Source: Ascidiella aspersa
Lineage: Eukaryota
NCBI GenBank assembly: GCA_963924565.1
Contig: OZ004608.1
Span: 1,922,001 to 1,986,000 of the forward strand
Length of the DNA stretch: 64,000 nt
Direction of reading: 5' to 3'
Shown: piece after piece, positions 1,346-32,400 of the stretch
Position numbering within the stretch: position 1 is the stretch's first letter
Layout of the letters: every line of letters starts with the position of its first letter
Notes under the pieces: model-generated
What the model was told of the DNA's origin: nothing
Seen by the model: only the letters and a program-made list of their open reading frames with translations
The model's database searches: none
Position numbers and translations under genes: made by a program

Positions 1346-4079
1346 TTTAGACCTGCTTTTGACACTTTAAGAAGTTAAGTTACCTCTGGTTGTTGACATT
1401 GTAGATTGTAGGGTGATTTAATTCTGCATATTTAAATCCGCAAGCTGTTTACTTTTGCAAATGTCTGACAAACTCTATCTCATATTTTCGTGTTGTTATG
1501 AGGTTGTCAGGTCAAACTATGCAGAGCTTTAATCAAAAATGCATAACCTGACGCTTGGTGTACAAAGGCCAAGATATAAGCGACGGGCTTATGTGTAGAA
1601 AAGCAGATTCGTGGAGATACGACCGAAAAGGTCATTGATCTATGAACGCAAGATACAAAATAGGCCAAGACTTTGTAAAATCACGTTCCATATCAAAATG
1701 CTACCAAACCTTTTTTGTGTAAGACATTCATGTAAACAAAAATTATATATCTATAATATTTAACAATTGCGTCACATCTTTTATAAGTGGTGCTTTGAAT
1801 TACTTCTTCTTCGAATTAACTAAAGTTCGTATCGAAACGTCGAAATCAAAATGATGTCGATCTACTCGACCTTTTTGGCTTTGCAACTCACTATCAAGCT
1901 ATAATATTTAACTTCTGTTACCTGAACGTATTGCTTTATATAATTGTTGTTTCCAGTATTTGATAAATCTTTATGAGAGATAACAGCTGGAGGTTGTAGT
2001 TAAATGTACACATGGCAACAAAGCCCTTACTTATAGGAGTATGTGTCATTTAAAAAAAAAAGATTTAAAATGTTCAAACGTCTTTGTGGGGTTTGATATT
2101 CAACACGGATAAATGTCAACATATTAATATAAACTAAATATACCCCTAGTGTAGATTCTAAGCCGTTTAGCTCCGAATAGTTACATGTGTGGCAGTTATA
2201 TGTTTATAATAAGAGATCACTTGGCAAGCGCGGCCATATTGCGTCTCCAAGCGTCGTTGATTGAATCCCGTTTCATCTCTCCTACATTATTAATGCCAGC
2301 TCTTAAGGTCCCCAATATCCCGCTTGTGGATTTATTGCGACTCGTTTCACTTTTGCCGTTAAGTCTTCCCGTTTAATCACAACGCAAAGATTCACTTGGA
2401 TCGATTGTTCGCTTCCCCAGTTCTGACTTCTCTTATTGCGTACAAAGGTTAGAGTTTTCGTTCTGAACATGCGCCTGAATCTTAATGGTGAAAAACAAAT
2501 GATTCTGGTTGCACATCAATAATGAATATCAAACTAGCAGGCGCTGCAAATCTTATTAAAACTGAAAATCAGTTTGTTTGGATGTCATGCGATTAATATA
2601 TTTCACTCCTAAAAGCATTATTGGTAGCTTACCTCAATAAAGGCGTAAAATCGTTGTTTTTTGAAGCGTTTTTTTATTGATTCCGTTAGGATGGTTAGAT
2701 GGAATCAGTTTTAATCTACTTTTTAGTTCTGCAAAATACAATTTATTCAACATGCTTTTGTGGTCCAACTATTATAACCGCAAAAATGGAAACGGAAAAT
2801 ACAACTTCATGATTTTGAAATACTGCCCTAATCGCTTGATATTTCGGACCGTGTTTCCAAACATCTTTGTCTAATTTGCTTGAATTTGCCGTTTTGTCTC
2901 TTAGGGTAATTTTAACCAAGTCTTCCCTTTTGGGGTTCACAATTCTTAGCTCCATATTGCCTCGATAAAGGTATAAGATTTTGCACAAACATTAGTCATG
3001 GTGATAGACCATCGCACAATTCGTGTTTTCTGGTTTGTTCGCAATTTATGTTTGAAAAAATCTTTAAAAAATTAGAAAGCCGGAAAGCAGGGCTTTAGAA
3101 TAATGCTTTCGCAATGAGGGTCCACGGACCCCAAAAGAAATCAAAATAAAGCTTGTAGGTATTAAGTCTATTACGAAAGCACTCGTAAAATGGAAAAAGA
3201 AAAATATTTTGTGTTGATATCTTAAGTATTGTTAGTTGGACACAGCATTACGTTTAAAGTGCGTCAGTGTTTTACAAAGTCTGGGCTAAAAAATAGAGGT
3301 CGGCAGGCTTAAAACCACTGCCTGTGATGTTTTTTGTGAGTGTTTTGCCATAAAACGCATTATTTAGGAAGAACTGAGAATGCTTTTTTGACAAAGCTTG
3401 TATATCAACTTCAACAATGTCTTATCTTATACCTTTGTCGTTTTTTTTTTTTTGGGGGGGGGGGGTATTTTTTTGCAAGTTTTATAAACGCTAAAATTTT
3501 CCCTATAGATAGATATTTCTCAACCTTTACCATTTTAACATACTGTGCCACCTCTTTTTAGGAAATCAACTAAGATTTAAACATTTTCCTGCTATTGGCG
3601 TGGCCCACTTACAACTCAAAAACAAAAAATCAATCTTAGAGCATTTTGATTTCAATGCTATAACCCTCGGCTGCAATTCTGCAATGATTAATCCCTGTGG
3701 ATTGGCAGCATATGCCCAACTGTCCATATCGTGTATGTGTGCAACGCTAAACGAATCACGAGCCTTTATAAACGCAACAAGCCAAAGGTGTTCTCACAAT
3801 AAAATGTATTAAAACCCTCTCAGGTAATTCGATTCGAGACGAACCGATTCTCGCAAAGTAAAAAGCCGGGAAGCAGATGGCAGTACGTAACATGAACGAC
3901 AAAAAGCACATTTTATCACAGAAACCACGAAAATAACGTTAAAATAAATAGGTACTTAAGCAGACACTAGTGTAATTATATAAGACGGCAACGCTGTGGC
4001 CCGCTTCATTGAGATGCAGCAAAAGAAGAAGAAAGAAGTTTGAAGAAGTTTTTCTAGTTTGCGGCGCTGGTTACGACTC

Positions 4080-7000
4080 CTACTTGCGACTTGACACCCA
4101 TTCGTAGTTGCTCTGTAAAACAAATAATAATAAATTAAGCTTTAGCAAACAGTTGCTACAATTTCTTTTAAAATTACCTTTTGGTTAAAATTCTTATAGC
4201 ATTGTTTAATTTTCTTAATTATCAAGCGTTCAAACTTGCTTTATATAAAACAAAAATTGTACTTAACATGTACTTAAATGCTTATATATAGTAAACGTTT
4301 TGGTATTTAATAGTCCCTACAATTTTCGTTTTTTTTGTATTTTAGTTTTTTTAGTTAAATCTTGTTCTGCATAATATTGTAAACGTTTTTGTTTAGTCTC
4401 CAAAACTTAAAACCTTTAAAACGACCCCAGGGTTGCACGGTTTAGCAAATGACAGTTTGTATTTTTTAAGTCAGTTTTCAATCCACTTTTCGAGAACGCA
4501 TATTCGGTTTCCTGCAGCTTTGTAAGGTCAACCTCCGATGGAAGCCATTAGAGCGGCTTAAATGAAAAAAAAAGTATTTTTTCGGTTTTATTTTAAAATA
4601 ACTTTTCGCAGAAAACTGTTGATGATTCATTACCATAACACGTGAAATTTGCGCGAATTTAAGCGCTATAATTATTATCATTTGAGACAATTCAGCCACG
4701 CTAGCATACTTTTAAAAGCATGTTAAAAAAATGGGATTTTTTATCATTTTTTTATTTTTTAAAATTGTTGAAGCTATCGTTCTACAAAAACGTTTTTCTG
4801 AACTGTAATTTATAGTGACTTTTTTGGCGTTTTTTTTCGTTTCTCGTGCTCCGCGTTTTTGTTTTTTTGACGTTTATTTTGTGTGTTTTAATATTTTTTG
4901 TTGCAAATTACAAAATTTGTAAACTGTAAGAATACTCACAGAAAATGGTGTGGACTCTTCCTTTTCTTTCAAAGTGTCTCTGGCCAGCGCCTGGAAATAA
5001 AAGCGAGGTTAGAATCGATGGAGCAACCTTAAAGTGACGCAAAGTCGAACCAACGTCAGAATTAATGCGACCGCTCGCTACAATCCCAGCGGAAACAATC
5101 ACAGCCTTCGGATTATTTCGACGTCAACTCGCTAATCAGGGCTAAACGGGTCAACCGAACGCTTTAGAGCTGCCACCAGTAATTTGAAATAAATCGAATG
5201 CAAATTGTATAAACACTGACATTTTTGCTCATCTACCCTGCTATATATAAACTCTTGCTACAAGGCATAATATTAATCAAATAATATTTTATGTTTATGA
5301 AAGCTGCATAACAATGCTATTTAATTACCAGTGGAGCTAATATTTTATTACCCTGATATAGGCTTTTAGTTTTTACCATTATAGTAGAAATTTTATTCAA
5401 ATCTGAGTCGGTTGTTATTTTTTTAAAACAATCGAATAAGACCAAGAAAAGTTTGTCAATTTTTTTTTATTTAAATTATGTTGTAACAACGAACTTCAAG
5501 GCAAATCTATTTTTTCCCTAACAAGAAATGAGCCGCTCACTCGCAGGGTTTAACAATTTGAATAAAACGAAGTAAAAAAGTTTTTAAAATAAAAAACAAC
5601 ATTATGGATTTTGGGATTTTCCCTCAAAACTACAAAATGAGTACGCCTGTACAGAAGTCAGATGTAAAAAAATAAACAATAAATTAAATATTAAAACGGG
5701 CCAAAAAATTCTTCGAAACGTTTAAAATTCTATTTACTTCTGTATGGGCTTTGATATTCTTACTACGTCCAACTACAACCTCCAGCCATTATCTTAATTT
5801 TTATTCGAAACTTACTACAAACAGCAATCAAGCCCCTCACCCGCAGTATTTGCAGCAGTGTAGCTCTGTTGTCTTGCTGCACAGCGTTGCTTATGGCGTC
5901 GTCGTACTTGCCATAGTTGACCGAGGCCCCCGAGGCCTGGCGCCGGCTGGCCGTCCGGTAGTTCAGGCCCTGGTCTCCCCCCGAGGCCGGAACCGGGCCG
6001 GCCGCAAAATCGGCGGTGTCCCTGAAACAAATTAAAAAATGTAGTTGTACTAATCAGTTTCTGGATAAAATTGAAATTAATGATATTTCAGTCTTTTTCG
6101 ACAAATCAGCGTTTTCACCAAAATAAAAATAAGAATTTGTCGTTTTTTCAAACTCTAATTTAAAAATTGGATAAAAATCTTTTTGGTAAAGTTAATACTA
6201 AATAATTTATCTTTCAAAAACTTCTGAGACGTTTCTGTCTTTTTTGATATAATTAATTCCAACTATATTATGCATTACAATTGACTTTCCGCTTATACGA
6301 AGATTTGTATCAAATAAGTTTTAGTAAAAATGTTGTTTCGTTGGTTTTAAAAAACACAAAAGCGCTTTTCTGGAAAAAAAATTATGTTTTTTGTCCGAAA
6401 TTAAAACCGAATCCTACCCAGTTTCCACGAAAAAATGGTTACATTTTCATCAATAAAAAATTAAATACCAATTTTGAACGCACTAAAATAAGTTAGGACA
6501 ATATGGAGCCAATTAGTCACAGTTTAAAAGTGTTTTTTATTAGCTTTGAAGGCCGTCGTCAATCAAGACACGAAAATAGATTTCTGATCGATAGTGGTTC
6601 GGCAGTTAAGGCCGCTGCATCGACTAACTCTGACTAAATAGCTTATATTTGACCATAAAGCACAAACTGTAGTGGATTGCTACCTTAAGTCTTATAAACA
6701 ACATACAACTTTCGTTTTTTTTGGGCGACATATTTCAACCTTATAGATCGTGCTTCTAAATCTTGTATATTTTTTCATCGCCTTTAATTTAAGGCAGTTA
6801 GAATTTAACTTTACAGATTCTGCGTCCATCCATTTTTTTTTGTCGTCGTAAATTAACCTGGTTGATCGAGCTTTTAATATTTTATGTTGTTGCCTTTAAT
6901 TCACGGCAACAAAAATCCTGAGATTTTGCCTACATTTTTCGGCCCAATTCATTAAAAGTAATAAAAACCTTCAATTGTACGTTATTTTTTTCGACTTTTA

Positions 7001-7328
7001 TTCAAGGTGATCCAATACCCTAAAAACCACTTCGTCAATTTTTGTTCAGCCCATTTTGTTTAAATTTTTGTCAACACATTTTGTCAACATAAAAAAATGG
7101 AACATTTTGCTTTAAAATTTCCCAATTTTTTTAAATTATTTTAGACCTATAACCGAAGATACGCATCGGGAACCGAAATTAAAGCAAACTGTAGATAACA
7201 CACCTTTTTCCTCCGGTGTTTTGGAGTCCTGGTTTCCACCACTTGGTCCAATGTCCTGCTTCTGAAGCAGAAACAGCAGCGAAGAATAGAGCAAGTGCCA
7301 GGGTTAGGTTAGAAGCGTAGTGCGCCAT
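4080..7328 (-). CDS. GnRH-related (GnRH-X-like) neuropeptide precursor, 129 aa, 4 coding exons: 7328-7204, 6021-5841, 4990-4940, 4112-4080
   Basis: Manual splicing (donors gtgtgt/gtgagg/gtgagt; acceptors ttgtttcag/tatttccag/gttttacag; 125+181+51+33=390 nt, in phase) gives MAHYASNLTLALALFFAAVSASEA-GHWTKWWKPGLQNTG-GKR-DTADFAAGPVPASGGDQGLNYRTAS-RR-QASGASVNYGKYDDAISNAVQQDNRATLLQILRALARDTLKEKEESTPFSSNYEWVSSRK*. It has a hydrophobic signal peptide, an xHWxxWWxPG GnRH-type motif and a GKR amidation/cleavage site. Exons 1-2 are the most secure; exons 3-4 are inferred from splice signals. Confidence 0.85.
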
Positions 7329-9224
7329 TTCTTGCTTGAAGGAGATCAGTTTAAATAAGTTAAATAAATATAACAGTGTATGTCGGTTACTTCACAGTAG
7401 AGATTATAACAGCAGGTGTTCGTCGCTTTTTCTGGAAAAAATAAATCAATTTTTGGGTTCTGGTGCGCTTAACGATGAATTCAAAGTGGGAAGTTTTTTT
7501 CAGAAAGTTTTCTGAAATGCTACTCTAGCTTAAAGAGCTTTATCACATTTTCCCCCAAATTTTAAAACTCTTTTCCAACCGATAAAAATAAAAATAGATG
7601 GGGCTGCAAATAAAGTAAATCTGCAGACTTCTAGACCAGAGTAAAGAAAAATAGCACACACTCTTTACGTTATGTAAAACAAATAATTCCGCATTTTTTG
7701 CCGACCTACGCAGAAAATTAGCGCGCAATTCCTAATATCGGCAAAAGCAAACAGTTCCGTATTGTTTAAGTAGGTTAAGACACGTATTGACCACGCAATC
7801 CCAAAATCCAGCAAACAAAAAAACAGTTTTTAACCGGGTTTCCGAAAACTCAACACACAACCCCGCATTAAAACATTGCAGAGCCTGTACAAGCACAAGG
7901 CACAACCCTGGTCAGACCCATCTGCGCGAACCAGCGGCAGGCGCTGGCCGAATGCATCCAATTCTTGCCGCACCGTGCTTTTATAATCCCCACGCGCCAA
8001 AAAGTAAACAACACTTTTTCCCGAGCGACATCTCTCTTTACGCGAGCGGCGTCGGCCTAAAAATAGGGCTTTTCCACCCGGTGTTACGTCGTTACAGAGG
8101 CCACAGACCTGAAATTGGCCCGCTAATGTGGCCCCGAAAAGCGGCAAAACGTAAGGGCTACTTTTAAGCACTACATGCTTCTTTATTTGTGCGCGAAACT
8201 AGATTCGTACGTAAAGCGGGAACCTTGAAGTTAAGCGTTAAATGTTTTTAGGTATGTTGATGTTACAGCTTGCTTTAGTGGTAGTATATGATTGATTGAA
8301 TATGCCAGTTAGAAAGTTAAACATTTTAGAAGTAACACTTTTTTCGAAGATAGCAAAATAACTAACACATCGGCATCCATTAAAAAGCTAATAAGCGAAA
8401 ATAGATGAGCAATTGAGCCTGTAAAATGGAAATCTTGAAGTTAAACTGGTTTTACAGATATTAAAGATAATTTTGCCTTAACTACATTTTAAAGAACAAC
8501 GCTCACAAGAATGGCATGGAAATATTTAAGGTCCGACTACGCAGAAATCTTTAAATCTTACTTTATTCATATTTGACACCAATAATGCCAACTCAGTACA
8601 TAAGGCAAACTAAGTTCAAATAAAATGTAAACATTTTGCTAAACTTTGGTTAAAATTAGTTTAAGGAATTTTTATGTTTATAATTGCACAAAGTTTTGAG
8701 GCTTTGAAAAAAGTCAGATTTTTGCTAAAAAAGAGTAGATTTTGCGGTTTTGGCGACAATAAAACAAAATCGTAGATCAATTCGTTTATTTTTTAGTCCA
8801 AAAAAGATTTGAAAAGATGACTTTTCTAAAGTCTCTGCGCAGAGCATCGTCCAGCAAACAGGTTATAGTGAGTACGAGTATTCGAAATACGTCAAAGTGT
8901 CAACATCACTTCCATCCCTGCGCTGGCCCAAAAGTGCGGCCGTTCTGCGCGCGCGTCACAGACAATCGAGCGCGCCCCTACGTCACAATGCCAGGGGCGT
9001 CACGTGAGCCGCAATGCACACAGGCTCCCCAAACCCGAAGTAATTGCCCGACCGTCTTTTCTCCCCAAAACACGAGTTTGAAGGTGACGGGGAAAACGAA
9101 CAAGTTTTAAACGACTTTAAAAAGCTCGTAATTGCAGCAGCGCGGGTTCATTGACCCGTGACCCTTGCGCAGAGTTTCCACTTTTAACGATTGATTGCTC
9201 TCGGTGTTATTTTGGAGCGTAAAG

Positions 9225-17441: not shown

Positions 17442-20400
17442 ATGGCGACTGCACTTGCACAAACGCATCACATGTTTGGGCTCCGGCCCAGCATCACCGG
17501 AAGCATAAGCTACCTCGATGAACAAACCATTGTCTTTCCGTCGGGAAACCAGGTGATCAGGTTCAACATCGACCAGAAACAGCAAAAGTTCATTTCTGGA
17601 TCGGATAAATCGCAAGGTACCATTATGGATTCAGATTGTGTTTGTAATATATGTTTTAATTTTGTGTTTGTATACTAATTGTTAAGCCTATTGAAGCATT
17701 TTAAAAGCTGCAGCTAAGTTTTAAATTATTGCAAGTCAATAGCTTTATTTTTCTACTTGTGTATGCTGAGGTAGTAAATAGTTAACAACTACCCCACAGT
17801 TGTCATAGACGTTGACTAAGTTGCCAACTTATTTGGGAAAATATTTGTTAAATTATCTATCGTTATTGTTTGCAACTGGCAAAATCGTGTGACAACCACG
17901 TCTTCTATTCTAGACGTTTTCCACATTTTTGTAACTTCTGAAAGATGTTTTTGATTCATTTAACCATTATAATTATCTCAGTATTTTGGGATTGACTAAT
18001 AAACCTTTTTACGCATTGCCAAACAAATCATCTTTATAAACTAAATTAATATAAATATTCATAACCTAGGCAGAATTATTGTTTCACCAAAATGATACAC
18101 TTCCTTTCAGGAATGACTGCTATTGCTCTGAGTCCCAATCGCCGTTACGTTGCAATTGCGGAAAAAGCAGACAAACCAACGGTTACTATCTATGACATGC
18201 TGCACGATCAGTCCAAGAAAAGAAAAGTAAGAAAAAAAATTAATTATTTCAATATAAAAACTGATGCCCTAATGATTCGAATTTAACCTATATTTAAGGA
18301 TATTATGTTAAAATGAATATCAGGGACATTTTTAAAACTTGGCTTAAACATATTTATATATATATATACATATATACATAAAAAAAGTATTAGTTTTGTT
18401 AGTAAGTAACTTCAAAATTTACAAGGCATTATATTTTGCCATGTTTAAACTAAATATGAATTTACTGGGCCATTAATATAAAAGTATCCAGTTTAAAGCT
18501 ATATGTTTATGGCAAATATATTTTAAAAAGCTTCTTTTTATTTCATATATATGAAAATTATCATATATATATTTATTTATATATGTACCTATACTTTGTC
18601 AGTGATTTAAATTATATTTTAATGCCTAAAATTTTTACTTGAATGCAATGTAATTTGTTATTTTTAAGTGAGTTGTTTTCACGATAGATTAGTTTTGTTT
18701 GGATATTTTTATATCAGTTATAGTTTAACAGCACCTATATGCTAAACGTTTGTGCACATGTAAACATTTGAATTGTTTCTTGCAGACTCTGACGGCCCCA
18801 GATTTGCAAACGCACGAGTTCGTCAGTCTCTCATTCTCACCCGACTCGAAATACCTGATCGCCCAAGGTGCCAAGCCTGAATGGACCCTGGTATACTGGG
18901 CCTGGGAAAAGTCTAAGATCATGGCAACAATGAAAACAACCAACCAAGCTGGGCAGCCTGTCTATCAGGTTTCTTGAATTAGGATTATTAAACATAATTT
19001 GATTTTCAGTTTTGTCAATTCGGACCTGTAAAAAATTGATTTTGCTTTTTGCACATTTGAGCCAGGAAAATTTAATCTTTTGCTAGATTTAAGAGATTTA
19101 TTTCTTCTATTTGAAAATTGTAAAATCCAAACCAAACTATGTGGTCTACTTAAAATGTTTTTTTTTTATACAAATCTGTGTTTTTTTTCAAAGAACATGG
19201 CTTGTAATATTTTATTTATTGGCCTGTAAATATCTATGTGTTGCACTAATATAGTGTTCCTAAAATATAATTACAATTTAAAACTAAAAATACATGTCCC
19301 AATTGGAAAAATTGGTAGTGTACTACTATGGCAGATTAAAAATTTTAAAACATTTATTATGAATTGTAGATTGCGAGTACGTAAATAATATTATGTTATG
19401 GCAAACCCAATTGTTCAATTTTTTCCTTGCAACATCTTTAGGAAGTTTTGTTAAAAATTTTACTATATTTAACTATTTGTTTGTTTGTAACAGAAAATCA
19501 AAATCAATTTCTGCTGTATTTTCCTAACAATGAGTATAAATGTGCATATCAGGAGTTAATTATATTTACAAGCATTTTAATATAGAAATTAAGTTTAGAT
19601 CGGCACAGAATCATTGTGCTTTGCCTTAAAGATTAAAACGACACACCAGGGTGTCGCGAAGCACAGTTTAAAAACCTCTATGCAAATCCAATAAAACCAA
19701 CATGTTAAATTCATCTGACAATAAACACACTATTCCACAGGTTAGCTTCAACCCTCAAGACAACACACAGATCTGTGTAACCGGCAACCACATTTTCAAG
19801 CTCTTTCGTTACGCAGAGGGAAATCTTAAGCAGTTTGGGTTCCAGAAAATGGAACCTCAGAACTACTTATCACATGCATGGGTAAGCTGCAACTTAGATT
19901 TAGTTATAATGACTTAACATTGAAGTTTCCAAAAACTGACATGAGCAATATGACTTGCTTATATTTTGACTTAATCTGAGTTTTAATAATTTATACTACT
20001 TTTTAATATGTATATTTTGATATAAATAGTATATTACCAAAAATTAGCTCAAATTTTTCATACTTTGTATTATTGTGCAAAATATTGGCCTAATGCCATA
20101 TTAACCACAATGGAGTTAATCCTACTAAAACAATACCAAAAATAAATCTGTTGAAATTAAAATCAACCAAAAATAATTACCCAAATAGAGATAATAGCAA
20201 CATTCTTAAATTTTTGTAATAAATTCCAATCTAGCAATATCCAACTCTATGTATTTAAAATGTAAATGTATATCCTTTACCATTCCTCATAATATTTTTG
20301 TAAAAATAACCAAATTAAATTAAAATACAACCTAGAAATTTTAAGTTTCAATCTGATAAGTGATAATACAAATGCAAATATTAAAATTATAACACGCTTT

Positions 20401-23400
20401 TTCTTGCCCAACCCAGGTTTCAGACGAGCGAGTTGTTGTTGGAAGTGACACAGGAAAACTTCTTCTGTTCGAAAACGGAGAACTTAAGTCTGAGTTCCAC
20501 GCTGCTCTTGCCACAGGATCCACAGCTGATACAAACAGCATCAGGTATAAAGACCTTTATGTACTATGTGAATATTAATTGGAGCATAATGGTTGGAGGT
20601 GGTGGTAAACGTCTGAACCCCCTTTGGTATTTAAATAATAAACTAATGCTACAGAATAGAATTTTGAGACTTCTCCAAAAGCATTTTGTCAGCAAAGAGG
20701 TGTGTTTATAAAGTTTTAAGTTAAAATGCAGCAGGCAATGGTGCTATGGTTGTTTCTCGACTTACTCCCCTCTGAGCCTGTGTAGCTCAGTTGGTAGAGC
20801 AACGGTCCCGGTAAGACAGAGGTGTGAGTTCGAACCACAACACATGCTAGTTTTACAAATATAATGCAGCAAGCAACGGTGATATGGTTGTTTCTCGACT
20901 TGCTCCTCTCTGAGCCTGTGTAGCTCAGTTAATAGAGCGGCGGTATGACCGAGGTCTTGAGTTCGAACCTCACCACAGGCTAGTTATTTTTCGAGCCTGC
21001 CCTGCTTGCATCATTTACCGACATATTCGGTGAGTCTGCGATGAATTTTCGGTGTGCTTGCCGACATTATAGTTTGCCCTAAAATTTTAAATGATTAATG
21101 TATACAACAAGTTCCTCCATACAACGCTCCGCTACACATTCCCACACAGAGCGAGCGTATCGATGATCCCCGAGGACGCAGTTAGTGGGTCAGGAAGCGG
21201 CATCGGCTCCATCCAGATCACTTCCATCGTGGCCCACTCGAAGGGATTCGCATGTGCCGGTGGAGCCGGAACCGTCCACCTGTTCGACAAAACCGATGAG
21301 AAAGATTTCTACCGGAAGACCAGGGTTGTCAAGGTGGGTTATGTATATATTAGTTGCAATGTTACGAATGAAGCATTTCGCACTTTTGCCAGATAACATA
21401 TTTTTTCTTGTTTATGTTAAATTTGCTTCTCGTCCATTCAATCAACAAACTACATAAAAGTAACCAATACATAATTGTGTTCACAATAAAATAGTAAAAT
21501 AAAAATGAAAAAAAAAAAATTTGTATAAAAATATCTGTACTAGAAAGCCTAGAATTTTTAGAAATATATCAAGTTTTTTGGTTAAATAGGAGCTAAAAAT
21601 GTATTGTTTCCAAGCCAAAAATCCAAGCTTTGATAAAGTATTTTGCAAAGCATGCCGGATTTAACAATGTGTCGTAAGTTTTAATTCCCAACAAGCAATA
21701 TTTTTCAACAAAACTGCTGCTCTATTTACCAACGCCGACATTTACTCTGTTTAATTGGCTTACACCACAATCGCCTTGCTTCTTTGCGCGCTAAAAACCA
21801 GCATGAATCTTTGCCAGTGATAACCCCGTCGATCTCCCTCACTTTTATATATGTACACAAAACAACTACGGAGAGGCCGAAACCGGACTGATTTGTCAAG
21901 CCTCTGCGAAGGCATCTTGGGCACTATACATTGTGTATCGTTATCATTGGCCAGTATGACTCCAGGAGGACTGGCTCACAGGATACACATTGTGCATATT
22001 AATGTTTATATTATGTGATCAAGCCCTTCTGGAGTCACACAAACTAACAATTAAAGTAAAGCTTCCCAAGGCGTCTTGTGTACTTATAATGCGTTCCATT
22101 ATCTTTGGCCATTACCACTCCAGAATGGCTAATTACAGAATATACAGTGTGTATATGTACGTTTCAGCTGCGTTCCTCTCATGTATTCAGATATCCCCAG
22201 ACCCCCACAGCACTAAATAACTCCGGCACTTTCCCTAGATACCCCCAGACCCCCACAGCACTTAATAACCCCTGAACTTTCCCTAGATACCCCCAGACCC
22301 CCACAGCACTGACCCCACACAAGCAGAGAACCAGACGATAGTTGCACTTACAGCGAGTCCCAGTGAAGAAATGCTGGTTGCTGCTACCGACGACCGACAA
22401 CTCTATGGGATCGCGCTATCATCAACAGACCTCGGGAAAGGTAGCTTGTGTGTTTCTTGCAATCTGCGTAATAAGACGAGAACTTTTTTATTATATTTTG
22501 GAGATTTTTTATAATACAGCCCTTACAATTTTTTAGTTTTCTAAAAACCCTTTAAAGGTGCAGCTCACTTTTACCAACTTATATTCCTTGCCGCTCCATA
22601 TTACTAACTTTTTAGTCATGTATTCCACATATACCTAACTTCCCAAATTTGCGTTCCTTGTGTAAAAAAGCGCGAATGACTCGAAGTTTGAAGATGAAAC
22701 CTCATTGTATTGCTAAAGCTACCAACATAAATGTTAAATGATTATTCTACCCACATAAATGTCAAATTATTCATGCCAAATTATTTACCAATATAAATGT
22801 CAAATTACCCTTTAAGAGGTGATAACCTAAAATATATGAACCACAACTTTTACACATATTAAACATCCTCAGTATATTCTATTCACAGGCGAGCAAGCTA
22901 CTTTCGACCCCCTCACCCATTCCTTCCACAGCAGTGGCATCACAGGACTGGACGTTTGCATCAGGAAACCACTCATCGCTACTTGCTCGCTTGATAGATC
23001 AGTGCGCATCTGGAACTACGAGACAAAGTAAGCTCTGGAAAATGTAGTGTAAGCTGATAAAGCATTTATGCACCAGTGTGGGGTAAAGGTGGTTAGAAAT
23101 ATAAGAAAGATTATAATCGGTTTCCCATCTAAAAAAAAGGACGAATTAAAAGATCTTACACAGCAAACAATCTCATGATACTAAGGATAAAAGATTGTTG
23201 CTTTGTTAAAATTTAGACAAAATACGAAGTCACGTTTCGCAGAAAATAAAAACAATTATTTTTTAAAATGTGAACCCAAAACATAAGGACTTATATAAGA
23301 AATATTAACGTTGCGACAGCCTAAATATCGATGATCCTGTTCTAAGTCCGTCGCCTCATGGCCTAGTTTTATACCACGTGGACCAATCTTGGTTGGGCAA

Positions 23401-26400
23401 CTAGAATGTATGTGCAATGTACATGTGACCTTAAGTTGACTAAGGAACAACAGTTTAAAAAACTTTCAATTGACTAATATTGCTCCGGTGAAGCGACGCT
23501 TTATATTATAATAAATTCTGAAACTGCAAAATATCCTATTGTTCCCAGCACCTTGGAGTTGTACAAAGTCTTCCAGGAGGAGGCTTACAGCATCGCTCTT
23601 CATCCCTCAGGACTCTACATTTTGGTGGGATTCAGTGACAAACTCCGACTCATGAACATCCTCATCGACGACATCCGAATCTTCAAGGAGCTTACCATCA
23701 GAGGATGCAGGGAGGTGGGTCATCATCACTCTTCCTTTTCTCTCTTTAGGCGTTGATACTCTAGGGATGCTGAAGTGTTAAATACGAGTTAATGCAAATA
23801 TTTTGGGAAGTTTTCTTTTATATTTTAAGTCTATCAAAGCCTATTTCTAGAGAGACTGATAATGTATTTTATACCTTTTCTATTTCTCTTAACATTCTAT
23901 AAAATGATTGACTTTGATTACGACAGAAAAGTCGAATAAAGAATATTTGCTTTAGTTTAAAGTTATTGTCGCTTTTTACGCGTAAGTTTTAACAATTGGG
24001 AGGCAAAATACTGTTGGGTGCTTTTTCAAGAAGTATAATTTAAGTAATAAAGTTGAAAATGATTCTTTCAACATAATTCTCAAAATACATTTGTTTAATT
24101 TTCACTAGCAGTTTGCAATTATAAAAATTTAAATTTGTTTTAAAGACGGGCACTTTGAATATACTGAGGTAGCTTGTTTCGGCCTAAAACTATTAACTTT
24201 TCCACGTGAAATAAATCTACTTAATAAAACATCTATTTACATGATAACTCATCTGCATGCCTCCATAATGATATGCTCAAAAAGTTAAAATTTAAACACA
24301 AATCAGGAAAGATTTAAAACTATACACGTACAAGAGATGATTTAAATGCATTTAACCCAGCTTATGTGTCCTAAATCTGAATTCTTGCTTGTTGTTCGTC
24401 CAGTGCGCTTTCAGCAACGGAGGCCACTTGTTCGCTGCTGTCCACGGAAACGTTATCCAGGTTTATTCGTCGACCACTTTCGAGAACGTTTCAAACCTGA
24501 AGGGGCATAACGGGAAGGTGAGAGCAGGGACGCTACTCATAATGTGCACGGCTGTCCGATAATATGGATCGGAGCCGATACCCGATTTTAAGTGGTAGTA
24601 TCGGTACTACACTGATACTATAGGGTGGTATCGGTGCTGATCTGGTACTAATACGCAGTTGTTATGTGAACGAACCGCGGTTTTGCAAGAACTTTTAATG
24701 GAGAAATAAATTTATCAGTCGGGATATTTCTTATAACTAAGGAAATGGTGGCAACCTAATAATTTTTTAATAAAATATTGTTTTTTTTGTACTGATAGGT
24801 CAGATGAATCGTTAAGTCGTTAATAGTATAAATAAAAAGCACTACCCCCATTTCTAGCAAAAACCCGGATAAATTTATCACAGTTTATAGACCACTTGTA
24901 CCTGTAAAATTTGACCGACAGATACACGCTTTGGATATGGACAAAACAAACTCCGCAAAATCAGACAAAATTAACAAACGCTACATTAACCACTAGGTGC
25001 GCGCGATCGCGTGGAGCGCCGACGACAGCAAGCTTATCTCCAGTGGAATGGACGGAGCTGTGTACGAGTGGAACCCCACAGCTGCCAAGCGGGTTAACGA
25101 GGTTGTGCTCAAGACTTGTGCTTACTCTGGGGTGACTGTTTCTCCCAGTGGTAAACACACATATGCTGTGGGGAGCGATAAGACCATCAAGGAAATCACG
25201 GAGTCACAGGTATATCGGCGTTTTGTCGATCTAGTGAATTTTATATTCAATTTTTGGTCTATTTAACATTTTTATGTAATGTTTTTCATCTGTTTTCGTG
25301 CTTTCATTTATCGTATAATTTGTTTTTTGCTACAATTGTTGCTTTTTTTAGCTTAGTTTTTCAATTAGTCATTTAATCTAAAACAATAATTCTAAATATT
25401 TTTGTTTATTGTATGTAATGTTTTTTATTTGAAAATATGCAATATTTTAATTTAATTCAATGTCTTAATTTAAACTAACTTTTTATTTTTAATCATTTTT
25501 TTTATGTAAGATTTAAATTTAATCCAATATTTTAATTTCAATCGCTTTTCCAAATTTTATGTAAGATTTTTATTTATTTAAAATCAATTTAATCCAACTT
25601 TTTTTTATAAATTTTATGTAATATTTCAATTCAATTCCATGTCTTAACTTATCTAACATTCCTCTCCCAACTTGCAGATCCTCCGCACAGTGGATGCAGG
25701 AGGCATGACGCTCACTCAGGTTACGATGTCACACAGCGGCCGGATGCTCTTCTGTGGAACAACACAAGGAGCCCTGAGGTCTATCAAGTTCCCTCTCACT
25801 GATGTGGGCGACTGGACAGAACATCAGGGACACGCTGGGCAAATTACTAAGGTAAGTTGATAAAAGTAACGTATATTGAGTACTTTTGCCATGTTTGGAG
25901 TTCGCGGATAAAGGACAATAAGGTAAGCCAAGATTCGAGATTTTATGCACCTTGAAAACAAAGAGCACAAAAAAAGGACAAAAAAAAGCAAAAAAACCTT
26001 ACGGTTATCAAGTCAAGCTGCTCATCTAAGATAAATAAGTCTTAAAACTCTACTTAGTTTTTACGGATATTACCGGGTATGCTAAAGCGTTAAGATTGCT
26101 AAACCTGAAGTTAATTTTAACCAAATTAACAACAATTATTTCCTTGCTGAAATGAAAGGTAATAAAATATAAATAAAATTCAACGTCGCCTCAATGTTAT
26201 GTAAAAAACCCAAAAAGGTTTTACTTAAACACTCTTTTGGCCGCTTCAATGTCTCTTAATCTGGCCGTCTTTTCAGATAAAGATAATCAAATAAAACTAC
26301 TATCAAGTTTAACAAGCAAAGTGTGGCTCTTTTTTCAATTTTTTCCCTACGTTGTATAGCTGAAACCTCAAACCATTATGCGGAAAAATGTGTGGCACTA

Positions 26401-29400
26401 TTACATTTACAAAAAAAACGTTTAAAATCCTCCACTTTCCTATTACATTCTGCTTCTGCTCACAGATGAAGATAACTTACGACGATCAGTTCCTTATCAC
26501 GGTGTCAGAGGACGCTTGCTTAGCTGTGTGGAGGGTGTCGGACAAGGAGGGCAGGGGGGTCAAGCACGACCGGGAAGTCCCCTACGCCGAGGAGATTCTC
26601 ATCACAAAATCGGACCTCGAAGAAAAGGTGAGAATTTAATTTGCAAATTATTTTTAGAGTTTTTTTTCTTATTTTTTAGAGTTTTTGCAATTTTTCACAA
26701 TGATCTCTAGTATGAAAGGCTTTTTCTTACAAAATCTAAACAGTGTATTTTTGTGTATAATCACCTAACATTTCGGCGTAAGACTGTTATCAGCTATTAA
26801 CATGCCTACGGTATTTTTAATGTTCACAATGTGTGTATAGCTGTTAAATTGCAATAAATATTTGATAGCGATTTTTTTATCGCTGAGGCCGCTCAGTAAT
26901 TGATTAAAAATCATAAAACACGTCTGGTTCCTTTGTCAAACCTCTCTAAAGATGATTCTGTTGTACATTACATCTTTATTTTATACTCTTCCCAGAACCA
27001 ACTCATGTCCGAGTTGAAGACCCGGGTTGAAGAGTTGAAGATGGAAAACGAGTATCAGCTCCGACTCAAGGACATGAACTATAACGAGAAGATTAAGGAA
27101 CTTACCGAGAAGTTCATTCAGGTGGGGAATAAATTCAACGTCCAGTATGCGATGGGTATATTTTCCCTGACCGGGGTGTTTTGTTGTTTGGGCAACACTC
27201 AAATGTTTTAAACTGCAGGAGTTTTGAGAAAACAAGTACATTCGTAAATAAGTAAATCTCTCTTGATTATTTTTTTAAAGACGTTTCCAAACTCATTCGT
27301 TTTTGGTTGAATCGCATTATTGGAACAACTTTTTTTCTTTTTTTTTTCTTTTTTTTATATTATGCATATCGTTAACAAACATATTCGGGCGTTGCTGGCG
27401 ACTAAACTGATTCAAATTTCATTCAAATTCAAAGTCGGCCAACAGCTGTAAATCGACTACTTCCATAATAAGATTATTTTTCTACGAATTAAACAGAATC
27501 TTTATTGGACCTAAACACTGAACTAAAGTATTCATGAACGTTGTTTTATCAACGGTGGTTGTAACATTCTTCGAATCCACCTGTTTACTCGAAACGAAAC
27601 AAGTAACCCTTTTGTTGTTGCAGGAAATGGAAAGTCTTAAGACGAAAAACCAAGTTTTAAAAACGGAAAAAGAAAAGGAGATTGCAAAACATGAAGAAGA
27701 GTTGGCTGAAGTGGTCGATAAACACTCCAAGGATATGCAAGACCTCGGTATGTGATAAAATAACAACTTTGTTCAATCATATCAGATAAAATAACTACAC
27801 TTTTAATCTTCTGAGCGGTTAAATTTTTTCATTTAATGTTAAAAAAATGTAAAATAATTTATAATAAAGTGTGTTTTTTAACATACAGACCTTAACAAGC
27901 ATACTTTTTTTACTTTATTACATGTTGCTCCTTAAAACCGTTTGTTACTTGCTATATATGGTGACACGACAAAAGGTTTTCTTCAGTCGTAAGACTGCCA
28001 CCTGATTGTCGGTAAATCAATAATACAAAAAACAAACAACAACCAGAAGTTGATGCTTGAGTCTCAACTGCTATCGTTTAAGTCTGCCACACCAAACTAG
28101 TTTTAGGTTACCCTTCCACTCTCTTAATCCTCTTCATATTGTAGAATCAACGAACAACCAGAAGTTGATGCTTGAGTATGAGAAATACCAGGAGCTCCAG
28201 GCAAAGTCCCAACGGATGCAGGAAGATTACGAGAGGCAGCTCCAGGATGCAGATGAGAGCAAGGAACAGGCTCTGGAGGAACTGACTGAGTACTACGAGA
28301 CCAAATTGCAAGAGAAGAGCTCACAGCTTGAACAGGTGGGGAGAATTAAGGGTCCTTTACTCTTTTTTTTGGGGGGGGGGGGGCAAATTTTCATAATTTT
28401 CGCATAATTTGTCTAATATTAAAAACAATTTGGAAATCCCAAATGGTAAATTAACAACAGGTTAAGAACCATTTACCTCTCTGTGGATTCATATCTTAAA
28501 TCGAATGAATTTGTTGTTAAAACAGAAACAGCATCAGTGTAAATAGAAGTATCTTCAGCTCCTATCGCGACAAGGTAGTAACACCAACTTTTGTAGGGAC
28601 AACTACAATGTCAAGGCACCATGTGCTCAGTGACCTTTGACCGCAAATAATAGAATGCTTACACACTTAAATAGGTCATGAAAGCACTTACATCAAAATG
28701 CGGTTTTAGCAAACTCACAGTTAATCTTAAAACTCCCTAATCTTTTTCATAATCCCGTTGTTGCACAGAAAAATAGAAAAAATAGAAAAATAATCCGGAT
28801 AACAATTTTGTAAAACCGGAATATTATCCGCTGTGGATGTTCCACTTTTCTTAATTTTAGCGTCACTCTGTAAGGAAAAGGGAACATCTACAGCGAAATA
28901 TTATTATTTCTTATAGATTTCCCACTTATTTATGTCTTATCATCGTATTATGACCTCCCTAATGTTTTTCATCTTCCCATTGTTCCACAGGCGAACGACG
29001 AGGCTCGTCAGCAGCAGCGCGAATACGAGGAGACGAAGCGTCAGATCGAGGAGGATGCAGACCGTGAGATCCTCGACATCAAGAACAAGTACGAGCGGAG
29101 GTTGAGGGATGAGATCGAGACAAACATGAGGCTCAAGGGAGAGTCCGGCATTATGAGGAAGAAGGTGACAAGAAGCTGATAAAAACTTAAAAAACTTTAA
29201 AAAAAAACCTGAGGAAAGATTTAAAAAAAAAGTTTAAAACAAAAAAAAACTTAAAAAAACTTAAAAAAATATAAAAATTCATTTATTTTAAAACTGTTAT
29301 TTTCGTGCAAGTTTTTGTTGTCTGAAAGTGATTTAAAAACAATAGTAGGTTAACAGCAAGTAACTCAACTTCTCAACAATAAAGCAAATTTTAGCTTACT

Positions 29401-32400
29401 AACCTGGAAAATTATATTTGACTTAATTTCATATCTTTTGTTTGTTTGCGCATAGTAATGACGTCATTTGGTATCGTATCGGATCGCGATAGTTTTTATC
29501 CAAATATCGGAAACGGAATGAAATGTCAGGCGTCGTACTTACCTGGACGCTACATACCATTGCTTTACTTCTTCATGCACAGTTCAACAGCCTCAACAAG
29601 AGATCAAAATATAAAAACGAAAACTGTATAACAGTATATGTAAACAAAGGACCTGAAGTAAAGATTTCCAAAGTTATATGTATACAACCTTATTTAAAGG
29701 GAGTCTTATACCTTACGTTATGTTTTTGTGCGCAGTTCAACAGCCTCAACAAGGAGATCGACAGCAAGAACGAGGAGATCCGAACGATGCAGCAGGAAAA
29801 GCAGAAGTTGGAGAACGTGATTAAGTCTCTGGAGAAAGACATCCACGGGCTGAAGAAGGAGATTCAGGAGAGAGATGAAACCATCCAAGATAAGGTGGGA
29901 AACTTGCGCTCTTATGCTTGTAGTTTGTTGGATTTGTTGTCATTTAAGCAAAAATACTCATCCCAAGAAATAATAAATCCTAAGTGTAGCCAGGGTTAAT
30001 TTTTATTTTGCTAAATTTGGTAAATTTTTTTGTTTTATTATATAATTACTATTATATTTTTATTGCATGTTACTATTTAGAATAAGGTAGGAAGTATGCG
30101 CTTCTCGAGAAAACCTCGCTAAGGGAGGCAGTTATTGCTTGTAGCTGCCGGATTTGTCCGTTCTTAAGCAAAATACTCTTCGAGAAATGTCCATAACCGC
30201 TGTAGTTTACAACCCAGCAAAGTGTAACTAGGGATGGATCCAGGGGCAAACTATTGCTAAATTTTTCAATTTAGCTACTACAATTTTTTTATTCCTTGTC
30301 ATCATTCAGGATAAGGTGGACTCCCTACCTAGCCCCTCGGGAAATAATCCTTAATTAATCCTGTTTCGGCTTGAAGGCTTTTAGCTGTTGAATTTTGACC
30401 TTTCTTTAGTAAAATAATGAAGTTTATTTTAAGTATTTTTAAAGATTATATCCAAATACGAAGACAGGACTCATATTTTTAAATTTGAGTTTTTTCTGCC
30501 ATTGCCTTATTTTTGTTTGTCCACTTTAAGATTAAAAAAATCTTAGTTATCACTGGGTCGCCAAAGCTTGACTGTTATATGCCAAGAAAAAGGTTGAGAA
30601 ACACTGACTTAATTTGATAAAAAAGTTTACTCTACCAACTGCTAATGTGTAATTTTGTAGACGATAACCTCAGTACTTTTTCACCCTAAAATGTGAACAT
30701 TTTTCTTTTCTCAGGAAAAACGCATTTACGATTTGAAGAAGAAGAACCAGGAGTTGGAGAAGTTCAAGTTTGTGTTGGATTATAAGATCAAGGAATTGAA
30801 GAAACAAATTGAACCGAGGGAGAACGACATCAAGGCAATGAAGGAACAAATACAGGTAAATACCCTAAAATCGAAGATATTAAAGCTGTTTTCAGCTATA
30901 CAATGTTCAAGAAAAACTCCAAAAAATAACAGCGGTTAACAGCGAAATAAGTGTTTCCTTTAGGCAAAGGGTTGGCAAAATCAGGACTCCGACAGTTAAA
31001 AAATACCTTTTTCGGATCTGTAAAGATACTTTACAAGCTCGTATCGAAACGTCTTAACCAAGATGTTGTCGATTTACTCGACCTTGTTACTTTACTGTTA
31101 ATGTTAAAGCTACATTACTGATCTGTGCATAGTATGTTTCCCCTTCCACTTGATATTTGTTTTAATATTCTCCCTTTCCACTCCTTAATCTTCGCCTTTG
31201 TTCGTTCAATGGAAATTTGTTTTTCATCCTGATCGGTTTAAGCCACGTGACTATTTTTTCTTTCTCTCAAGAGATAGATGTTTCGTTTATTGTCACCTAA
31301 TTTCAACCCTCTTGTTGATAAAAAAAAACATGTTTTCAACTGATCCTTATTTGTGTTCACAGGAGATGGAGAGTGAGCTTGAGAGGTTCCACAAGCAGAA
31401 CACTCAGCTCGAGCTGAACATCACTGAGCTTAAGCAGAAGTTGAGGGCAACAGATAAGGAACTGCACTTCGAGAGACAGAGGGTAGGTTTATTGATATTT
31501 TCACAAAATGCAATTATCTCAATATTAAAAGAAATATATTTGTTTTTAAGTTCCCAGAATTCCTGTGACAACGTTTATTTTGAATAAAAGTTTCTAATGC
31601 CAGTAAGTTAAACACCATTGAAAGTTTACTATCCCCCATAGTTCGTGCTGCGAACCTTAAAGGGAACACTTGGTTAATCAGTGCCCCCCACCCCCCCAAA
31701 AAGAGGGTGCCCCCCCAAAAAAAAACAATTACCCCCTTATTATAGCTCGGCTGTCATACTTCCGACTCTGTTGGAAAACCCCTCAATTTTCGCCGCCAAA
31801 GTGGTTTTGGCGTTAAACTTATTAGTACCGGAAAAACTTGCTGTGTGCCGCTTCTAATTAAGATGCAACTTTTATTGACTTTAGGCCTAAAATATTCGTT
31901 TCGCAGAAAAGAGGAACTAATATTTATGCTGAAATCACGTTTTAGCACACGCATCAATCGGAAAAAAAACTTTCTTAATTCTCAAAATAAAGCCATCTGA
32001 AAAAAAACTCTTTTATCTATTTTAATTAAACGATATGGATTTTTATTTATTGAAAAAGCGAAATATTAGTTTTTAAAGATTGCTTCTACAAAATGTATTC
32101 AATTTAAAGAAATTCGGTTTCGGCAACCTACTGGCCTTCTTGCTTTTCTACTTCAACAAGTTTTTTCCGGTCCATGGGGCAGAGATGTCTATACCATTTA
32201 CTGAAAATTTCTCACACAAGTCTTGTTTTTTTGGTTATTTTAACGATTTTTTCTCCCCAGGTTCGAGACGCCGAAGCAGTGAGCAAGCGGATGAAGACCG
32301 ATATCCACAATTGCGTCGGCTTCCTGCAGGAGCCCAAGAAACTGAAGGAATCAATCAAGGGAGTCTACGAAACCTACGTACATGATGACGTGGTAAGTGG

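Follow-up and report, generated by a model that had tools for sequence, protein, structure and literature searches.

A four-exon gene, absent from earlier listings, lies on the minus strand of the 64,000-nucleotide window (the whole stretch of sea-squirt DNA analysed here) and would encode a secreted, hormone-like peptide. We consider it slightly better than an even bet, with a probability of roughly 0.55, that this ascidian gene, present in one copy, encodes a divergent secreted neuropeptide precursor of GnRH-X type, from the extended GnRH family.

Anatomy of the gene and its neighbourhood

The four exons were read directly from the sequence and would join in frame via three GT..AG introns, giving a summed coding length of 390 nt (129 codons and a stop) in the four-exon model. 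The coding part of exon 1 (7204..7328, minus strand) begins with an ATG at 7328 and contains a signal peptide, the predicted peptide, Gly-Lys and two bases of an Arg codon. The signal peptide (7257..7328, minus) comprises 24 residues if cut after S-E-A, with a hydrophobic core at residues 8-19, and leads directly into the predicted 15-residue peptide GHWTKWWKPGLQNTG (7212..7256, minus; G25-G39), in which a core of H2 W3 T4 ... W6 W7 ... P9 G10 is followed by a five-residue extension. The last bases of the exon (7204..7211, minus) supply the amidation-donor Gly, a Lys and the AG of the Arg codon, the third base of which is found at 6021 on the far side of intron 1, and together these form a G-K-R processing site. 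The first-pass annotation had placed a four-exon gene here, with a signal ending in S-E-A, a peptide at 7256-7212 and a G-K-R site with a split Arg codon, and every one of these elements was recovered in its place.

Intron 1 (6022..7203, minus; GT..AG, GC 0.30) is in phase 2 within the Arg codon (AG|G), with the donor GTGTGT from 7203 and the acceptor tttgtttcag|G at 6021; DNA reads show a 4-base deletion polymorphism inside it at 6825. The associated (GAP-like) peptide begins in exon 2 (5841..6021, minus; donor GTGAGG), which contains an RR site and then Q...NYGK. This exon is GC-rich (0.66), open in several frames and lies within a 96-residue open frame. Intron 2 (4991..5840, minus; GT..AG) includes a high-copy repeat of ~35 bp at 5735-5769. 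A helix-like segment, LLQILR|ALARDTLKEKEE, is carried on into exon 3 (4940..4990, minus; 17 codons, acceptor ttatttccag, donor GTGAGT), an exon known from the model only, and intron 3 (4113..4939, minus; GT..AG) separates it from the coding part of exon 4 (4080..4112, minus; 10 codons and a TAG stop, acceptor gttttacag). Both of these last exons are short and were delimited by splice consensus alone, and exon 4 is probably the weakest part of the gene model. Overall, the GC content of the exons (0.47-0.66) contrasts with that of the introns (0.28-0.33).

An in-frame stop is present 22 codons 5' of the ATG, which itself stands in a good Kozak context (A at -3, G at +4). Some 75 nt 5' of the ATG is a putative TATA-like box, TATAAT (7403..7408, minus), and a trans-splice acceptor may be provided by an AG (ttcaag|) that precedes the start codon by 6 nt. 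Neither AATAAA nor ATTAAA was found as a poly(A) signal in the 480 nt downstream of the stop, and a scan for promoters and terminators of bacterial type, a type irrelevant for this DNA, was empty. A bidirectional promoter shared with GTP cyclohydrolase I, raised by a weak Pfam match at 8763-9107, was rejected because the real GCH gene is located on contig C5 and the ORFs at 7736-9107 do not resemble coding sequence. The flanks of the gene carry WD40 and coiled-coil signals only, on the plus strand, with a coiled-coil exon at 29523-29999.

Uniqueness, database searches and read evidence

A DNA motif for HWxxWWxPG gave one match in the 308.6-Mb genome and none with the reversed-pattern control, and exon 1 and exon 2 are each single copy in the genome. 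As this unique motif is flanked by a signal peptide on one side and an amidation/dibasic site on the other, the locus is more than a chance occurrence. Three canonical GnRH genes in the same genome (loci L002, L003 and L005, on contigs C5 and C9) encode seven QHWS-x4-PG decapeptides, each then followed by G-K-[KR], and thus this ascidian possesses both the GnRH family and the processing scheme that goes with it. The tunicate setting assumed at first pass is supported, with multi-copy QHWS-type GnRH genes in the very genome that holds the candidate.

Database searches using exon 1 and exon 2 separately detected no statistical homology. A word-indexed protein search gave no candidates with exon 1, a result whose meaning is limited by a length filter, and none with exon 2 inside its longer open frame, and a protein-language atlas yielded no usable match. 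An exhaustive HMMER search of exon 1 against 1.84 billion representatives returned two matches only (E about 3e-4), and both were rejected as alignments to the hydrophobic signal alone, in tandemly repeated artefact proteins. A metagenome scan for W-W-x-P-G-(x4-5)-G-G-K-R returned at least 80 loci; among the matches listed none had H-W upstream, and these were set aside as chance matches in GC-rich bacterial contigs. The Pfam GnRH model (PF00446) did not match the candidate, although it has no power here, since the canonical precursors of this genome do not reach its cut-off of 18.5 bits either (14.7 and 11.1 bits, and no match for the third). What ties the candidate to GnRH is a short motif together with the layout of the precursor. 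The first-pass description of a divergent member of the extended-GnRH lineage draws support from the gene model, the ascidian context and the nearest resemblance, but not from any statistical search.

The lack of a GnRH link in these searches would also suit a lineage-specific, secreted and amidated peptide that is Trp-rich and cationic and is related to GnRH neither in ancestry nor in the receptor it acts on, such as a haemocyte antimicrobial or the ligand of another GPCR, its likeness to GnRH being convergent. The net charge of the peptide (about +3) and its three Trp in 15 residues are in keeping with such a product, as are the single copy, the introns and the position of the peptide right after the signal, features in which the gene departs from the genome's three canonical GnRH genes. 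We nevertheless regard this explanation as unlikely, given that H2, W3, P9 and G10 stand in register together with the GnRH-X-specific W6-W7 pair and an extension ending in a Gly-amide, that the motif occurs nowhere else in the genome, and that the order of signal, peptide, G-K-R and associated peptide is the classical layout of a GnRH precursor.

DNA reads at ~5x list zero variants in exon 1 (7204-7328), which indicates that the Gly codon (GGA, 7256-7254) ahead of His-Trp is real; a sequencing slip is also unlikely because two bases of GGA would have to change to give a Gln codon. The concern raised at first pass, that this GGA might be an error for Gln, was thereby settled in favour of Gly. 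The variants found in the other exons are a synonymous one in exon 2 (5895) and a conservative E114D in exon 3 (4955). None of the 7.8 million RNA reads sampled (~6% of one RNA run, tissue unspecified) fell on any exon, and the reads in this sample were confined to the repeat within intron 2 (5735-5769). Expression of GnRH-X in Ciona is restricted to the neural complex and the larva (PMC7697785), and thus a gene that is alive would also be expected to go unseen in so thin a sample of a single library.

The same blank is what would be seen if the gene were a decaying or silent GnRH-X relic, in which the frame is still open, Gln1 and Ser4 have been lost as constraint relaxed, and either no expression takes place or no active peptide is made. 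The two GnRH positions that are most conserved are indeed changed, the canonical poly(A) signal is missing from the stretch searched, and the exon-wise searches gave no orthologue by which constraint could be shown. However, all three introns retain consensus donors and acceptors, the four exons are free of frameshifts and stops, signal peptide and G-K-R site alike are preserved, and the sole exon polymorphisms are the synonymous change and the Glu-to-Asp replacement, so that we consider a relic improbable. If the locus were no gene but an open frame arising by chance, with splice-like sites that are accidental, the ~6% RNA sample would likewise hold no transcripts and a GC-rich exon 2 open in several frames would fit, but this is very improbable in view of the combination of a Met-initiated signal, a genome-unique core, an amidation/dibasic site, three frame-keeping intron pairs and GC peaks at the exons.

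Signal cleavage and the predicted product

Cleavage sites were judged by hydropathy and a -3/-1 rule table. Four sites were legal, after S20, A21, S22 and A24, and a cut after A21 (V-S-A|S) is as canonical as, or more canonical than, that after S-E-A. The Gly-initiated peptide of the first-pass annotation is therefore one option of several: a Gly codon does precede His-Trp, but the N-terminus is not fixed by it, as cuts after S20, A21 and S22 obey the same rule. A cut after A21 would leave an 18-mer extended by S-E-A; the monoisotopic masses calculated for the amidated forms are 1793.9114 (15-mer), 2081.0231 (18-mer), 1993.9911 (17-mer) and 1975.9805 Da (17-mer with pGlu). The human GnRH2 signal peptide likewise ends in S-E-A ahead of the hormone, and to our knowledge every GnRH precursor is cleaved directly before the residue preceding His-Trp. 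The Glu located two residues before the Gly would be capable of forming pyroglutamate only if the cut fell after S22, a less favoured site with S at -1. Such a cut, with cyclisation of the Glu, is a rarer and hypothetical alternative that would give pGlu-A-G-H-W... in the register of the 12-residue protostome and echinoderm peptides, inside a chordate.

With GnRH-X-type descent as the preferred reading, we infer the following route from gene to product. The signal peptide would be removed and a prohormone convertase would cut at K-R, after which a carboxypeptidase would trim the basic residues and the exposed Gly would be converted to a C-terminal amide. The product would be a Trp-rich cationic peptide ending ...HWTKWWKPGLQNTG-NH2, with Gly as its N-terminus if cleavage follows S-E-A. 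Because a pyroglutamate cap is lacking and an extension takes the place of Gly10-amide, it would most likely be a weak or partial ligand, or a modulator, of the animal's GnRH-type receptors rather than a full agonist. By cryo-EM, pGlu1 contacts four receptor residues and activation is driven by the N-terminal segment (PMC12207466); given this part of pGlu1 in receptor contacts, a role as a natural antagonist may reasonably be proposed. A fuller evolutionary version, in which the GnRH-X lineage is an older ascidian gene that has here lost its cap to yield a free-Gly GnRH-family peptide by which the animal antagonises or modulates its own GnRH receptors, is put forward only tentatively and is rather unlikely.

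GnRH-X has been described from Ciona alone in the GnRH literature searched, and no other endogenous partial antagonist is reported for a GnRH system (PMC7697785). If the candidate is a second, divergent member in another ascidian, the GnRH-X lineage is conserved, and the changes that it tolerates are exposed, with W6-W7, P9-G10 and the amidated extension kept and pGlu1 and Ser4 lost. In light of the cryo-EM contacts (PMC12207466), a natural peptide of the GnRH family that lacks pGlu1 would offer a ready means of probing how binding and activation separate. If silent or unrelated, the gene is merely an unannotated gene for a small secreted peptide.

Comparison with known GnRH systems

Measured against the pGlu1-His2-Trp3-Ser4 consensus of the GnRH family, the candidate retains His2-Trp3 but has Gly1 and Thr4: the residue before H-W is Gly (GGA) rather than a Gln able to form pyroglutamate, and Ser4 is conservatively replaced by Thr (ACC). 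Pro9-Gly10 is present, but Gly10 is not the amidated residue, as L-Q-N-T-G intervenes before G-K-R. The resulting ...KPG-LQNTG-G-K-R is an extension of GnRH-X type with a Gly-amide predicted from sequence at its end, and the Trp6-Trp7 pair is likewise of GnRH-X type.

With the candidate, the canonical GnRHs of tunicates (tGnRH-1 to -11, together with this genome's seven decapeptides) have in common H2-W3, P9-G10 and a Gly donor with dibasic site. In contrast, they are exact decapeptides with Gln1, Ser4 and G10 directly before G-K-[KR], and their precursors hold 1-4 peptides, internal after Arg, in uninterrupted coding exons, whereas the candidate is extended, lacks Gln1 and has a single peptide directly after the signal in a gene with introns. 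In this respect it resembles the vertebrate precursors, in which one peptide stands right after the signal, with G-K-R next and then an associated peptide encoded across additional exons. It differs from the vertebrate GnRHs in having no pGlu and in its C-terminal extension, and its first intron falls inside the Arg codon of G-K-R, while the vertebrate intron is located within the associated peptide. Lamprey GnRH-III (pQHWSHDWKPG) is identical to the candidate at W7-K8-P9-G10 and shares 6/10 identities. The octopus GnRH-type peptide has 12 residues, pQNYHFSNGWHPG-NH2 (PMC7697785, table). If cut after S22, the candidate E-A-G-H-W-T-K-W-W-K-P-G would share the register of such protostome and echinoderm GnRHs (a residue able to form pGlu, then two additional ones, H, an aromatic, S/T, x, x, W, x, P, G), a match that is entirely hypothetical in that it needs both the less favoured site and cyclisation of the Glu.

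The closest resemblance is to Ci-GnRH-X of Ciona intestinalis, which ranked first of 23 published GnRH cores against the candidate (BLOSUM62 sum 50, next 42) with 6/10 identities including W6-W7, as the first-pass annotation had perceived. The sequence given for it there, pQHWSNWWIPGAPGYNG-NH2, and its partial antagonism of GnRH receptors are both borne out by PMC7697785, which cites Kawada et al. 2009. Both peptides have H2, W3, W6, W7, P9 and G10 and an extension past P9-G10 ending in a Gly-amide, which is predicted in the candidate. They differ at position 1, where pGlu1 of Ci-GnRH-X is matched by Gly or by an S-E-A or E-A N-terminal extension, at Thr4, Lys5 and Lys8 (Ser4, Asn5 and Ile8 in Ci-GnRH-X), and in a tail of 5 residues (LQNTG) against 6 (APGYNG). 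The Ciona precursor reportedly contains a single copy of its peptide, as does that of the candidate. At the level of codons, taking GenBank accession AB219239.1 as it appears in PMC6048306, 21/30 bases of the core are identical; Ciona Asn5 is converted to Lys by a single base change, and Ser4 to Thr by one replacement change (AGT to ACT) and one synonymous change.

Structure and variation of the candidate gene

Direct reading of the sequence and an in-frame join of the exons confirmed the four-exon, minus-strand gene model with a leader, a peptide and a G-K-R site that had been proposed in the first-pass annotation. In the ORF listing of positions 3900-7500, a 49-codon ORF starting at the ATG at 7328 encodes, in order, a hydrophobic leader, GHWTKWWKPGLQNTG, and G-K with the opening two bases of a split Arg codon, which are followed immediately by the GTGTGT donor at 7203. 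The coding part of exon 1 (7328-7204), exon 2 (6021-5841), exon 3 (4990-4940) and the coding part of exon 4 (4112-4080), all on the minus strand, were joined by coordinates to give 390 bases, comprising 129 codons and a TAG stop. All three introns are bounded by GT..AG with pyrimidine-rich acceptors, and their GC content is 0.28-0.33 as against 0.47-0.66 in the exons. The 3' half is the weakest part of the model, since the short exons 3 and 4 were placed from splice consensus and frame only; no AATAAA or ATTAAA occurs within 480 nt past the stop.

At the 5' end, an in-frame stop lies 22 codons before the ATG, positions -3 and +4 of which are A and G, and a TATAAT lies approximately 75 nt upstream. 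The minus strand at 7329-7345 is a pyrimidine-rich run ending in AG (tctccttcaag) 6 nt ahead of the ATG. Trans-splicing to a spliced leader is common in tunicates, and this AG could be an acceptor of that kind. Just upstream, a GC-rich block (7736-9107; GC 0.49-0.57) has several open frames on both strands, the translations of which matched no family and have a non-coding appearance. The block could represent a promoter region rich in CpG, or else some element that was not recognised.

The concern that the GGA encoding the initial Gly was a misread Gln codon was not borne out. GGA is two positions away from either Gln codon, making a simple base error unlikely; genomic reads of the species (X6, ~5x) had zero differences across 7204-7328, and in an independent marine metagenome (X4) the contig covering 7196-7371 had two differences in 176 bases, none of them listed at any exon 1 position. 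Outside exon 1 there were two exon variants: 5895 is synonymous (Ala84), and 4955 gives Glu114Asp. At 7196, 8 bases into intron 1, the X4 contig diverges from the assembly, pointing to an indel or an insertion allele within the intron. The same intron has a 4-base deletion polymorphism at 6825, carried by 5/5 DNA reads and by one contig of a run labelled as another organism (X5). Both X4 and X5 contain near-identical pieces of the locus, introns included, so this species has left DNA in samples that carry other labels.

Predicted processing and the mature N-terminus

The candidate carries a secretory leader and a single G-K-R site, Gly and dibasic processing sites being common to it and the canonical GnRH precursors of the genome. 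A convertase would cut the precursor at K-R, a carboxypeptidase would then trim the basic residues, and the Gly donor would yield a C-terminal amide. Within residues 15-30 the -3/-1 rule is satisfied at four sites, after S20, A21 (V-S-A), S22 and A24 (S-E-A), and cleavage at V-S-A/S is no less canonical than at S-E-A/G. To our knowledge, cleavage in all GnRH precursors precedes His-Trp by one residue, so that family logic favours S-E-A/G; the human GnRH2 leader likewise ends in S-E-A. The Gly-initiated peptide originally proposed is nevertheless one option among several. A cut after A21 would produce an 18-mer beginning S-E-A-G, and cleavage after S22 a 17-mer with an N-terminal Glu able to cyclise, which would share with octopus and echinoderm GnRH a 12-residue register (pGlu, two residues, H, aromatic, S/T, x, x, W, x, P, G). 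For the amidated products, the calculated monoisotopic masses are 1793.9114 (15-mer), 2081.0231 (18-mer), 1993.9911 (17-mer) and 1975.9805 Da (17-mer with pGlu).

In the associated peptide encoded by exon 2 (5841-6021), R-R (residues 68-69) is followed by QASGASVNYG-K (K, residue 80). QASGASVNYG is a possible second amidated peptide, for which the downstream cut would be monobasic.

Homology searches, neighbours and expression

Word-indexed protein searches with exons 1 and 2 queried singly gave no matches, an exhaustive HMMER search with exon 1 gave two matches only, both spurious and signal-like, and a protein atlas search found no match to the candidate. It was also unmatched by the Pfam ten-residue GnRH model, below whose cut-off the canonical precursors of the genome fell as well, and a metagenome motif scan produced, among the matches listed, only chance bacterial ones. 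Statistical homology to GnRH is not demonstrable. A convergent secreted peptide outside the GnRH family would fit these blanks, and we consider it unlikely.

A plus-strand neighbour has WD40 repeats and a coiled coil, with WD40-bearing exon-sized ORFs at ~20000-35000 and a CEP85-like coiled-coil ORF at 29523-29999. This is compatible with the CFAP57 named in the first-pass annotation, although that identity is unproven; for ALG2, the other neighbour named, there was no glycosyltransferase signal at E of 0.001 or better. A weak GTP-cyclohydrolase match at 8763-9107 was rejected as spurious, the genuine gene lying on contig C5.

The species has a single RNA run (X7), of which about 6% (7.8 million reads) was read; 0 reads fell on the candidate exons, those placed lying solely on a short high-copy repeat within intron 2. 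In DNA, RNA and metagenome runs alike, this ~35-bp element (5735-5769) has a read depth of ~250-280x versus ~5x around it, with many opposite-strand joints at 5735-5744; it is therefore likely to form an end or a hairpin portion of a small, MITE-like repeat present in very high numbers. The blank sample is an absence of support, not a refutation. In Ciona, GnRH-X is restricted to the neural complex and larva (PMC7697785). A silent relic of a GnRH-X gene would also fit the blank; set beside the intact 129-codon frame, it too appears doubtful.

GnRH genes of the genome and likeness to Ciona GnRH-X

A degenerate Q-H-W-x5-P-G-G-K-R pattern occurred at five sites in the 308.6-Mb assembly (control, 0), in which the window occupies C2:1922001-1986000, and translation showed three canonical GnRH genes (L002, L003 and L005; C5:22258180-22261714 and C9:19162358-19162476 of assembly G000) with seven decapeptides. 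One gene on contig C5 has a single copy (QHWSNRYNPG), its neighbour 3.4 kb off has four (QHWSDRYQPG, QHWSNFYLPG, QHWSPMFKPG and QHWSTGLGPG), and that on contig C9 has two (QHWSSNLSPG and QHWSLSLSPG). All seven differ from tGnRH-1 to -11 of the review table, and two copies have G-K-K instead of G-K-R. Precursors holding several GnRH copies are characteristic of ascidians (PMC7697785), which identifies the animal as one. In contrast to these genes, the candidate has introns and a single peptide directly after the signal.

Exon 1 and exon 2 each occur once in the genome. The HWxxWWxPG DNA motif had exactly one genome match and no control matches, against our own chance estimate of 0.1-0.3 for ~15.5 specified bases in 617 Mb of two-strand sequence. 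We consider a chance ORF very improbable. Since the motif is unique, the candidate is the GnRH-X-type gene of the species if any exists, with no separate Gln-initiated copy. Overall, the observation made at first pass was confirmed and its interpretation partly supported: we put the probability of a live, divergent GnRH-X-type neuropeptide gene at slightly better than even (about 0.55).

When the ten-residue core was scored (BLOSUM62) against 16 published GnRHs and the seven from the genome, the best was Ci-GnRH-X (6 identities, sum 50), followed by lamprey GnRH-III (sum 42), the lead being due to W6-W7. The Ciona peptide, pQHWSNWWIPGAPGYNG-amide as given at first pass and listed in the review table, inhibits Ci-GnRHR-1 and -3 by 10-50% (PMC7697785). 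The candidate string did not occur, and GnRH-X outside Ciona was not described, in the literature searched. At the codon level, 21/30 core bases are identical to Ciona AB219239.1 (codons printed in PMC6048306): Asn5 to Lys takes one base change, Ser4 to Thr one replacement change (AGT to ACT) and one synonymous, and Gln1 to Gly two.

In GnRH receptor structures, pGlu1 touches residues 1.35, 3.32, 6.51 and 7.39; activation is driven by the N-terminal segment, the part of the peptide that enters the receptor most deeply (PMC12207466). From this role, the candidate, which retains His2-Trp3 and Pro9-Gly10 but has no lactam cap and is extended C-terminally, should bind with altered efficacy, and a putative action as a partial antagonist or modulator like Ci-GnRH-X is the most economical prediction. 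The candidate shares with Ci-GnRH-X the extension past P9-G10 and a terminal Gly followed by the amidation donor.
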